A DNA stretch of 63,519 nt, counting the filler, from Octopus bimaculoides (lineage: Eukaryota), in NCBI RefSeq assembly GCF_001194135.2. It is 4 parts of 4 records of this genome, joined end to end, with 100 filler letters (N's around TTAATTAATTAA, not from the genome) between each part and the next. Parts side by side here need not be neighbours in the genome. Positions count along the whole stretch, not along the records: positions 28,771 to 44,230 come from NC_068987.1; 3 more parts are not named here. One strand, 5' to 3'. The notes below the pieces were generated by a model, which was given only the letters and a program-made list of their open reading frames with translations, was not told where the DNA came from and ran no database searches. Below are positions 41,283 to 44,230 of this stretch, piece after piece; position 1 is the stretch's first letter, and every line of letters starts with the position of its first letter. Made by a program: the position numbers and the translations under genes.

Positions 41283-41700
41283 ACTGAAATTCCAATACAA
41301 CCAAGCATTTTTTCTCACACAGAATTTCTAACATACAGTCCACACTGCACACTGTTCATTCATCACACCAGGAACAATCATTTTGTTTTGTCAACCAATT
41401 TTTTTGGATATGTTTATGTTTATGACAGTTTGAACTTACCATACCACAGGAACTAACAACACAGATAACAAAGCTGTACTCCCACAAACATAATTCCTAC
41501 AGTTCATATTACTAATCCCCAAGTTGGTACATATGATTGTGGTCTTTTTGCCATGGCATATGCATTTGAACAGGTCATTGGAAACTCTCCAGAGAAGTTT
41601 TTATTTCATCAGTTAAAAATGTGAGCATATTTAAGATTTTGCCTTGAAAACAATAAATTTGTTCCTTTACCGAAAGTAGAAGTTTTTCAAATGCTTACAA
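41283..41700 (+). pseudogene. Ulp1/SENP-like (clan CE) cysteine protease domain, disrupted; apparently the N-terminus of the Penelope-like ORF
   Basis: NNHFVLS (His 41379), YVYDSL (Asp 41424), PQVGTYDCGLFAMAYA (Gln 41520, Cys 41538), FHQLKM*AYLRFCLE; all catalytic residues in one frame. Confidence 0.7.
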
Positions 41701-43009
41701 AAACCAAAGAAGTCACTCACTTTCTTTCACCCACCTAGAAATAGATTACTCCTAGAAAGACAACTAAAAATTATGACTTTTCACATGAACATTCAGAACA
41801 ATTTTTATCACCCAATAGGTTCCATGTTTTAAGTGAAGACTTCAAGCAAAGCCCAAAAGGTAGTTAGGAATCTAATGAAAGTAAAACTGTGAAAACACTT
41901 GCCCAAGAAAATCCATCACGCTAGAGAATAAGTCCGTCATAAATTTATCTAAACTAAAAACTTTCACCAGATGATGTCTCTGTCTTGGAGCTTGGACTGA
42001 GTTTCTGCCTAAGCACTAAGAATTTCAACAAGAATAAACTAGCTCAAGGGCTATTTCAGTTTGTCCACCATCGCAAACTGAAGGAATGTATTTTTGAAAA
42101 AAATGATAATGAGGAGTCAGATAACCCTATGCTTACTGAAGATAAAAATGATAATGATCAAATTCGACATAATTGGATTGAAAAAAATCCCAATTGGTAT
42201 CCAGATAAAGTTCAGGATGGATGTTCACAAGCACTACTGGAATTTCTTGAATCTTGTCAGATAGGCATTAGGGAAAGCTTTAAAACAAGTGGAAAGAAGT
42301 CCTGAAATAACCTCACAAATTTCCAGCATTACGCACTCCGTCGTCTAGCTAATAATGATTCTATTGTTATTAAAATGGTGGATAAGGGAGGCACTGTTGT
42401 AATTATGAGCAAAAGTGAGTATATTTCGGCTTGTGAAGAAGTTTTAAGTGACAAAACTTCATGTGAAGAATTACCTGTCAATCCAAACCCCAATTACAGA
42501 GGGCAACTCTACTACCTGTCACAAAAAAGATCAGGTTCCTATATTCAGGATACTTTTGATTCTGTGTCTAAAATCAACAACTTTTTTAAGCACCGAAGTC
42601 ATGTAAAAAAACGGGTTTTTTTTGTTTTTTTTTGGTAACCATGGAGGTTTCTTCCTTATATCCCAATATCGACCACTATGAAGGTGTAGAAACATGTATG
42701 AATGCCTTTGAAAAATGGTCAAACAAAAGTATTCCATCTAATCTTTTATGTAGGCTATTAAGGTTTGTGTTACAAAGTAATATAATGAAGCTTGGACAAA
42801 AATTTTACCACCAGATGAGGGGTTGTGCCATAGGTACCCCCATGGCAGTTAATTCCATTAATGTCTTCATGACAAAATTTGAGACACAATTACTGCAGAC
42901 ATTCAAATACCTAAATTGGTCAAGAACCAATTCTCTGGTTACGGTACATTGATGACATCTGTCGTTTTTGTCTGGGAAGCATTTTTGTGACTTAAAAACT
43001 ATGGCTTTA

Positions 43010-43115
43010 ATCATCATCGTCATCATCATCATCGTTTAACGTCCGTTTTCCATGCTAGCATGGGTTGGACGATTTGACTGAGGACTGGTGAAACCGGATG
43101 GCAACACCAGGCTCG
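43010..43115 (-). mobile_element. Family C 3' fragment inserted into the Penelope RT
   Basis: (CAT)n-CGTTTAACGTCCGTTTTCCATGCTAGCATGGGTTGGACG... Confidence 0.85.
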
Positions 43116-44230
43116 TACAACATAAAATTTACATGTAGCTTTCCAAAAACTAGCACTGAATTTTGGGACACAAAAGTTAAGTTTTCTGGAGACAGAATAG
43201 TGACAGTTATTTTGCAAGCCCATGTCATCACACATGTACCTCCACCACTACTCTGATCATCCACATCATATAATTCAGTCAAATCCAAAATCCCAATTTT
43301 TGAGGATAAAACAGATTTGTACGGATATAGGGGATTACTGGAAACATGTAAATTCTTTTGTACACCATTAGGTCAAATGCAGTTACAGTGAATTGTGATT
43401 AAAGGAAATGGCAAAAGACATAGCTAAGATTAGCAAAGGAAGTCAAACTTTCACGCATAATTTTAGCAAAAAAAGTACAATAAGTGACTAAATTGTTTTA
43501 GTGATTAACTGGCACCAAAATTTCACTGGTATTTCAAAAGTGTTAGCATGTTGTGGAAAAATATCCTCATTTCAAACAAATATTTCCTCAGTTGTCAATT
43601 GTAGCCTTTAGACGGAATAAAAATATAAGAGAATTATTAACCTCTACTTCTGACTCCAAGAAAACTAACATTGGAGTTTCTGCATGCTGTACCTTGAAAA
43701 ACAGCTGCAAGAGTGATAAGCCCTGTTCATTGTGCAACAGCATGAGTCAAGTGAGTTCCATCAGGAATCATAACATAAATGTTATGATTTACACAGGTGA
43801 GACGTGTAGAGATTCCCATTTGGTGTACACAGCAGAATGCACCAAACACAATTTGATTCATGTTAGTTGTACAACAGAGCATTTAAACAAAAGATTCAGT
43901 GGGCACAGATATGATGACAGGCACAATAACAGTAATTCAACAGAATTTGTCAAACATTTTACATCAAATGGCTGCAATTTTGAAAAAGACTTGAAAGTGC
44001 ATATTCTCAGAAAATATTCTGAATCTGCTACACTTTCAGTCCTCAAAATGCATGAGGAGAAATATGGTTTTGAGTTATCCCTGGAGGGATAAATAAAATA
44101 ACAGAATTCATGATATTTACACAAAACTGTTTGATTAAATATTATTATTCTTTTTCCTTTTCTTTTTCTTTTCTCTTTTTTTTTCTCTGCCAGTTGTAAA
44201 CTTGAAAATTGAAGACTGATGATCTCATTC

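Follow-up and report, generated by a model that had tools for sequence, protein, structure and literature searches.

The window analyzed here, a stretch of 63,519 nucleotides from Octopus bimaculoides (assembly GCF_001194135.2) in which four parts of the genome are joined end to end with filler letters between them, contains at positions 41286-44092 a copy of a Penelope-like element (PLE) that carries, ahead of its reverse transcriptase (RT) and its GIY-YIG endonuclease, a predicted cysteine protease domain of the Ulp1/SENP type. The copy lies in the part that comes from NC_068987.1 (positions 28,771 to 44,230); it is decayed, truncated at its 5' end, and now non-functional. Its features, which are compiled in Table 1, were read with the help of several relatives, among them the intact predicted protein P0004, the more diverged proteins P0005 and P0006, and L001, which is the DNA locus encoding P0006. 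From these and further relatives it can be stated with near certainty that protease, RT, and GIY-YIG endonuclease belong natively to one open reading frame (ORF) of a PLE lineage.

Table 1. Features of the PLE copy in the window (helix-turn-helix, HTH; short interspersed nuclear element, SINE).
Feature	Positions	Strand	Landmarks, internal stops, and basis
Predicted Ulp1/SENP-like (clan CE) cysteine protease domain	41286..41675	+	codons read; alignment with P0004; stop 41622
Linker between protease and PLE N-terminus	41676..41935	+	stops 41736, 41742, 41865, 41922
PLE N-terminal region up to DKGG	41936..42554	+	VINLS 41936-41950; LELGLSFC 41985-42008; DKGG 42381-42392; stop 42303
RT palm	42632..43010	+	motif A LVTMEVSSLYPNI 42632-42670; motif B GCAIGTPMAVN 42821-42853; motif C LRYIDDI 42939-42959; stops 42993, 43008
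Nested SINE-like repeat, foreign to the PLE	43016..43114	+	divides the alignment of the RT after motif C and before KFTCSF
RT C-terminal part and thumb/HTH	43125..43545	+	KFTCSF, HHYSDHP, FLRIKQIC, VINWHQ; frame change at about 43207; stops 43369, 43396, 43489
Cys-rich linker and GIY-YIG endonuclease remnant	43553..44092	+	CCTLKNSCKSDKPCSLC 43685-43735; LVYTAEC 43820-43840; HVSCT; RFSGHRYD

The octopus copy and its decay

In a three-frame translation of positions 41100-44230, the protease reads EIPIQPS...HHTRNNHFVLS...YVYDSLN...QVGTYDCGLFAMAYA. The codons of the four catalytic residues lie in one frame, namely, His (CAT, 41379, in NHFVLS), Asp (GAC, 41424, in YDSLN), Gln (CAA, 41520), and Cys (TGT, 41538, in QVGTYDCGLFAMAYA), so that the Ulp1 order given in the original prediction is confirmed codon by codon. 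The common frame of protease, LELGLSFC, and DKGG, which had likewise been proposed, is also found; it is broken by stops and by compensated shifts at about 41441-41507, within the protease domain, and at about 41930-41966. In total, the copy has 11 internal stops (Table 1) and about eight frame changes. The stop at 41622 is a TGA at a site that holds an Arg in the intact P0004, which is consistent with decay of the CGA>TGA type that had been suspected from the window sequence.

Alignment of the copy with P0004 starts only at residue 113 of the latter and runs from the protease through LELGLSFC (69.7% identity over 264 amino acids, E = 1e-105, tblastn). The 5' truncation falls at about 41286 and thus within the protease domain, of which some 30 N-terminal residues are gone from the window copy together with everything 5' of them. 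As the protease belongs to the retrotransposed unit, the copy would have been cut inside the protease by incomplete reverse transcription. In the 15 kb piece, neither a second copy of the element nor a pseudo-long terminal repeat (pseudo-LTR) was seen. The linker that follows the protease retains remnants of two motifs conserved in the clade, KWxxP(K/R)K (T*K*ITPRK at 41736-41759 of the window, with asterisks for stops) and NRFxxL (NRFHVL, 41814-41831), and the corresponding linker of P0004 is open throughout. A linker with an SPNRFHVL motif had been noted in the original prediction, and the motif proves to be a conserved one; with FVPLPK and VINLS as its limits, the linker comprises about 87 codons and not about 75.

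The PLE portion was delimited by comparison with the relatives. The conceptual ORF of L001 (amino acids 187-607) matches positions 41319-42560 with E = 1e-58 (tblastn). To judge from the alignments, about 65 codons would have been deleted between NPNYRG (42486-42503) and SGSYIQDT (42531-42554), with loss of RT motifs 1 and 2 (LPKIHK...RPICSG). The RT palm, which changes frame at about 42925, is 51% identical to the RT of L001 over 106 amino acids, and its homologues score above threshold with Pfam RVT_1. The nested SINE-like repeat of about 99 bp has a 92%-identical copy on the opposite strand at 29827-29924. The C-terminal part of the RT and the thumb match amino acids 838-972 of L001 and amino acids 1156-1264 of another relative, P0032 (tblastn). 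The endonuclease segment is the sole long open stretch of the copy (179 codons), ending with a terminal stop at 44090-44092; positions 43550-44014 are 43% identical to the endonuclease of L001 over 157 amino acids, and homologues of this segment are assigned to Pfam GIY-YIG. Altogether, the window and the ORFs of L001 and P0032 share 35-51% identity. Raw, stop-containing translations of the window gave no match to Pfam, RT and GIY-YIG included.

The PLE type of the RT is evident from DKGG and from RT motifs A, B, and C in the window, and the 5' truncation of the window copy is a further PLE trait, as are the pseudo-LTRs and the inverted truncated copy at L001 that are described below. The CCHH sub-feature is variable: its CC part reads C..H (ECTKH) in the window, a form shared by several relatives, whereas other relatives have C..C.

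The surroundings of the copy are unrelated to it. A decayed fragment of an RTE-like long interspersed nuclear element (LINE) RT (FIDFKKAFDSV, GVRQGCLLSPILF, ANDTALL), 5'-truncated and directed away from the PLE, occupies about 40250-41085 on the minus strand, and the approximately 190 bp between it and the start of the PLE (41090-41285) gave no match. Farther away, the same part contains a run of N at 35224-35256, which is an assembly gap, a long poly(A/T) tract coding for lysine at 37800-37990, and a simple-repeat stretch at 28982-29049 with a weak mir-297 match on both strands that is well below the gathering score.

Relatives with protease and PLE in one reading frame

With the protease peptide alone as query, only three short fragments of the octopus type were retrieved, and exact look-up of P0001 gave no contig. 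P0004, P0005, and P0006 were obtained with a query spanning the junction between protease and PLE. P0004 (370 amino acids, 75% identical) contains in one open frame a 2A-like SVEPNPGP, SFLETC...PDGL, the full protease, the linker, and VINLSKLKLSRDDVSVLELGLSFCPS (VINLS/LELGLSFC). P0005 and P0006, which cover the entire query at 35% identity and have 31 cluster members, continue from Q...DCG of the protease via the linker and DKG into the RT. At L001, on a contig of 2.47 Mb, a stop-free frame extends from LIDAGLNLV (about 9791) through the catalytic His, Asp, Gln, and Cys, the linker, and DKG to RT motif B (11654), followed by a GIY-YIG region with two stops. This unit is flanked by pseudo-LTRs in the form of 156-bp direct repeats at 8653-8808 and 12960-13114, 4,307 bp apart, which enclose the protease. 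An inverted, 5'-truncated copy at 7774-8652, which is 99.4% identical to 12202-13079, abuts the upstream pseudo-LTR, and the two features together constitute a classic PLE insertion structure (PMC8557442).

A HMMER scan of the protease segment against 1.84 billion representative proteins gave 3,113 relatives at E <= 1e-3 and 346 at E <= 1e-10. The full architecture is present in the single unbroken ORFs of P0008 (1,260 amino acids on a 4.9 kb contig) and P0019 (1,223 amino acids on a 4.1 kb contig), and an identical domain order is shown by six more predicted proteins of 1,187-1,461 amino acids. When seven long proteins were scanned with Pfam, RVT_1 was found in four and GIY-YIG in four (both in two of them, neither in one), always C-terminal to the protease. 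Twenty-four representatives have at least 200 amino acids beyond the protease; a PLE follows the protease in 18 of these, including all 11 top-scoring ones, with a gap of 105-320 amino acids. Mean pairwise identity among nine full-length members amounts to 0.46 for the protease, 0.49 for the RT, 0.43 for the thumb, and 0.42 for the endonuclease, with 0.23 for linker and coiled coil, and the identities of protease and RT covary (Mantel r = 0.68, p about 0.001). On these sequence comparisons, the protease is best regarded as a long-standing, selected component of the PLE lineage.

One alternative is that a PLE landed by chance beside a DNA transposon bearing an Ulp1 domain, or that gene models were joined artificially. 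The window copy on its own could not rule this out, and the Ulp1-like family also occurs without PLEs, in company with PHD and SWIM fingers and in chimeric gene models. However, the order and a similar spacing recur in the 18 of 24 diverged representatives, the ORFs are unbroken on contigs of element size, protease and RT diverge together, and the protease at L001 is enclosed by the pseudo-LTR unit. For these reasons chance nesting is excluded for practical purposes, only a minute probability being left to it. The original prediction had itself named nesting as the outcome that would speak against a PLE subfamily with a captured protease; since most long relatives of the protease continue into a PLE, such a subfamily is what was found. 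The absence of an untranslated region or pseudo-LTR between protease and RT, which had been noted for the window, agrees with the intact ORFs of diverged families. As to the supposed N-terminal Ulp1 domain, its Ulp1-like nature stands and its terminal position does not, the domain being preceded by a leader, a 2A-like NPGP motif, and a coiled coil.

The composite ORF begins with a leader, M-DDLxxYRxRIGxF, and a hydrophobic stretch, followed by DPS[IV]ExNPGP, SHR[YF]FLxxC...P[KR]G, and a coiled coil (IDHY). The protease comes next, with WIPxLxLT, LxDxxIDA...HIHHxGxGHF...YDSLN...QxGxxDCG...DQSxMRxHL...FP; in full-length relatives it is internal, at about amino acids 190-480. Then follow the linker with KWxxPK and NRFxxL, NLSxRxL...LELGLxFxPS, DKG, the RT, the thumb/HTH, I-x-G-G, and GIY-YIG. 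The 2A/StopGo-like motif [IV]ExNPGP after the hydrophobic stretch is present in 17 representatives (amino acids 16-153) and in P0004 (amino acids 9-19). It reads DP[SGR][IV]ExNPGP in 15 of these 18 proteins, occupies a single aligned column in the full-length alignment, and takes the form DAGIETNPGP at L001 (about 9150-9180). The motif is a candidate skipping signal by sequence; its Asp is two residues off the position that it has in the canonical D(V/I)ExNPGP. From the window it is absent because of the 5' truncation. The I-x-G-G motif is near-invariant in the full-length alignment, some 8 residues ahead of the GIY motif; in the window it lies at about 43790-43815 (IYTGETC), decayed to Y-T-G-E. 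The interdomain linker, in the same alignment, contains no conserved Gly-Gly.

The precomputed Pfam annotation of P0005, P0006, P0008, and P0019 lists PF28514 (DUF8422) and HTH_animal and never Peptidase_C48. DUF8422 was absent from a local Pfam scan of P0005 and P0006.

The lineage has much in common with canonical PLEs with C-terminal endonuclease (Penelope/Poseidon, Neptune, Nematis, and Hydra), namely, the DKG region, RT, thumb, and C-terminal GIY-YIG endonuclease. Copies that are often truncated at the 5' end are a further common trait, as are pseudo-LTRs from partial tandem insertion and a neighboring truncated copy in inverted orientation, the latter seen at L001 (PMC8557442). In the published domain schemes of these elements, however, there is neither a protease nor a 2A-like motif (PMC8557442). 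A protease N-terminal to the RT is known from another class of retroelements: according to the passage of PMC4640811 that cites Malik & Eickbush 2000, NeSL-1 and Utopia-1_TSP are nematode non-LTR elements with an N-terminal Ulp1-like domain. They, too, combine in one ORF an Ulp1-like (C48) protease N-terminal to the RT with a C-terminal endonuclease (PMC4640811). The latter is a restriction-like endonuclease, and NeSL/Utopia elements have zinc fingers and a non-LTR RT and are target-specific, whereas the window lineage has a PLE RT with DKG, GIY-YIG, pseudo-LTRs, and a 2A-like motif plus coiled coil before the protease. It looks as though the protease was gained independently, that is, convergently, and the likeness to NeSL/Utopia is architectural only.

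Other retroelements carry peptidase domains of different fold. The PLE Chlamys-1_cBra has a Josephin-like motif in C-terminal position (PMC8557442), and Dualen/RandI non-LTR elements contain OTU or Josephin deubiquitinase domains (PMC8557442, PMC13405545). In contrast to the window lineage, these are Josephin and OTU folds and not clan CE, and they reside in algae and charophytes rather than in animals. 2A-like peptides have been described in APE-type non-LTR elements, and in ORF2p-like proteins of Haematococcus such peptides occur together with deubiquitinase domains (PMC13405545). The original prediction had declared a PLE with protease, RT, and GIY-YIG to be unfamiliar, and a full-text literature search indeed found no published description of a PLE-Ulp1 architecture, Repbase entries being outside its scope and prior informal annotation being possible; nor did the search find a 2A-like motif described for PLEs.

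Identity of the protease domain

A family profile built from 39 sequences retrieved SENP1 (E = 4.6e-7), SENP5, a fungal Ulp1-like protease, SENP2, yeast Ulp1 (9.3e-5), and SENP8. These matches extend over nearly all of the domain and align its catalytic residues with HW, YDS, and Q...DCG of SENP1. A profile of this size was required, as a five-sequence profile gave only marginal matches to PDB over QxxxDCG. The Peptidase_C48 threshold of Pfam is passed by the relatives P0043 (49.3 bits), P0105, and P0137, and PF02902 is precomputed on many others; the UniRef label of P0001 is 'Ubiquitin-like protease family profile domain-containing protein'. An AlphaFold2 model was made of the domain of P0004, which is a 75%-identical relative and not the window copy (predicted local distance difference test score, pLDDT, 91.1; predicted template modelling score, pTM, 0.88). 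In a Foldseek search against PDB, the top 50 matches of this model were all of clan CE, with SENP5 (E = 3e-8), SENP1, SENP3, SENP2, and Ulp1 at template modelling (TM) scores of 0.62-0.71, of which the highest belongs to SENP5. Viral proteases of clan CE were also among the fold matches, i.e., S273R of African swine fever virus (ASFV; E = 7e-4) and adomavirus and giant-virus proteases. A lack of any clan CE match, which had been foreseen as a possible objection to the Ulp1 assignment, was thus not encountered, and the domain is predicted to be an Ulp1/SENP-like protease of clan CE on the combined basis of the profile, the Pfam C48 matches of relatives, and the AlphaFold model.

With SENP1/2/3/5, yeast Ulp1, and DEN1/SENP8, the domain shares the fold, the His-Asp-Cys triad with the oxyanion Gln, and the N-terminal helical substrate-binding subdomain. 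It differs from them by an identity of only about 15% and by its location in a retroelement polyprotein. None of the four residues His, Asp, Gln, and Cys varies among 38 sequences, the mean column identity of which is 38%. An integral domain without catalysis, acting as a scaffold or binding ubiquitin or SUMO, would nevertheless be conceivable. Protease folds are often put to non-catalytic use, and tryptophans of the substrate tunnel are substituted in the window subclade. Against such invariance of the catalytic residues, however, a non-catalytic role is improbable.

In a search of the P0004 model against BFVD, the top match was Q6R2R7 (410 amino acids; TM 0.83, E = 7e-13), which is nearer than any SENP of PDB, and the next matches were 'ubiquitin-like cysteine proteases' of Phaeovirus (Feldmannia virus).

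More distant relatives of the protease, including P0136, P0157, P0163, and others, occur as fusions with PHD fingers, or in a single instance with a SWIM finger (MULE-like). Such fusions come from Branchiostoma, Xenopus, Hyla, Rotaria, and fish. Ulp1/C48 domains are also carried by Mutator-like elements (MULEs), which are DNA transposons. The C48 peptidases of oomycete CryptonF/S elements belong to the same broad transposon-associated Ulp1-like family, although those elements are DNA transposons with the peptidase as separate protein or fusion and with no link to an RT (PMC3212892). Apparently, the Ulp1-like module circulates between transposon classes.

Possible roles of the protease and significance of the architecture

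In active copies, the protease would be a working isopeptidase. It would strip ubiquitin-like modifiers, that is, SUMO and possibly ubiquitin or NEDD8, from proteins of the host or of the element, and this deconjugation would shield the element protein, its ribonucleoprotein, or a new insertion from silencing or degradation that depends on such modifiers. A deconjugase acting in trans on ubiquitin-like modifiers is tentatively favored, at slightly less than even odds, because the nearest relatives in sequence and structure are SENP and Ulp1 and not viral polyprotein proteases, because the spacers flanking the protease lack a conserved Gly-Gly, and because other retroelements join deubiquitinase domains to 2A-like peptides (PMC13405545). 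For the explanation as a whole, that is, the native architecture together with this role, a probability of about 0.5 is estimated.

The competing possibility is that the protease acts in cis and cuts its own polyprotein into N-terminal part, protease, RT, and/or endonuclease, thereby complementing the 2A-like break, in the manner of adenain, ASFV S273R, and poxvirus I7. Clan CE includes viral proteases that process polyproteins, some of which are among the fold matches mentioned above, and the ORF is long, with many domains and poorly conserved spacers. Moreover, the near-invariant I-x-G-G ahead of GIY-YIG resembles cleavage motifs of clan CE, and the window subclade has replaced both tryptophans that clamp Gly-Gly in SENP-type enzymes. 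Still, the linkers flanking the protease have neither a conserved Gly-Gly nor a conserved Ala-Gly, I-x-G-G may belong simply to the endonuclease fold, and the top matches in sequence and structure are SENP and Ulp1 rather than viral proteases. Cis processing is considered the main rival and less probable than deconjugation in trans.

Several observations weigh against the favored explanation of a PLE lineage with a trans-acting deconjugase. One of them is the I-x-G-G motif, which could be either a cleavage site of clan CE type or merely a part of the endonuclease fold. A second one concerns substrate recognition: the window subclade differs from SENP1 at the W of WLND, which is non-aromatic, and at the W following the catalytic His (HF). 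These two positions of SENP1 are what we take to be the Trp pair that clamps the Gly-Gly of SUMO; the pair is not conserved in the window subclade, and both tryptophans are retained in some other PLE-linked members. Judged from sequence, their replacement could mean an altered specificity or one not directed at ubiquitin-like modifiers. Furthermore, the mended window peptide reaches only 13.7 bits with Pfam C48, the threshold being 20.7, and the full-length relatives derive from metagenome contigs. Finally, Rfam gave no hammerhead ribozyme match in the window piece, in positions 7500-14500 of L001, or in L002, and the core CUGAUGA...CGAAA was found nowhere within the elements. Hammerhead ribozymes are reported to be universal in canonical PLEs; Naiad and Chlamys PLEs are without them (PMC8557442). 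Minimal PLE ribozymes may escape the Rfam models.

In a broader and more speculative version of the deconjugase proposal, the clade would be widespread in animals, though so far unrecognized, and all through its history would have possessed a catalytically intact isopeptidase and an N-terminal StopGo/2A leader. Removal of SUMO or other ubiquitin-like modifiers would then counter either SUMO-dependent silencing or the ribosome-associated quality control elicited by stalling at the 2A-like signal, and the protease would be a counter-silencing enzyme encoded by a retroelement.

Summarizing, the combination of protease, RT, and GIY-YIG endonuclease is a genuine, conserved, and previously under-recognized PLE architecture. 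The usual picture of a PLE is one protein with RT and GIY-YIG; an accessory enzyme that is conserved like the RT, plus a 2A-like signal, implies that the life cycle of this lineage requires a third activity. Since Pfam C48 is silent on the PLE-linked copies, the clade may be under-recognized in repeat libraries of cephalopods and other invertebrates. The existence of intact ORFs makes the enzyme experimentally tractable. If deSUMOylation or deubiquitination were indeed its function, a retrotransposon would be tied directly to the SUMO and ubiquitin pathways by which hosts silence mobile elements or degrade them.

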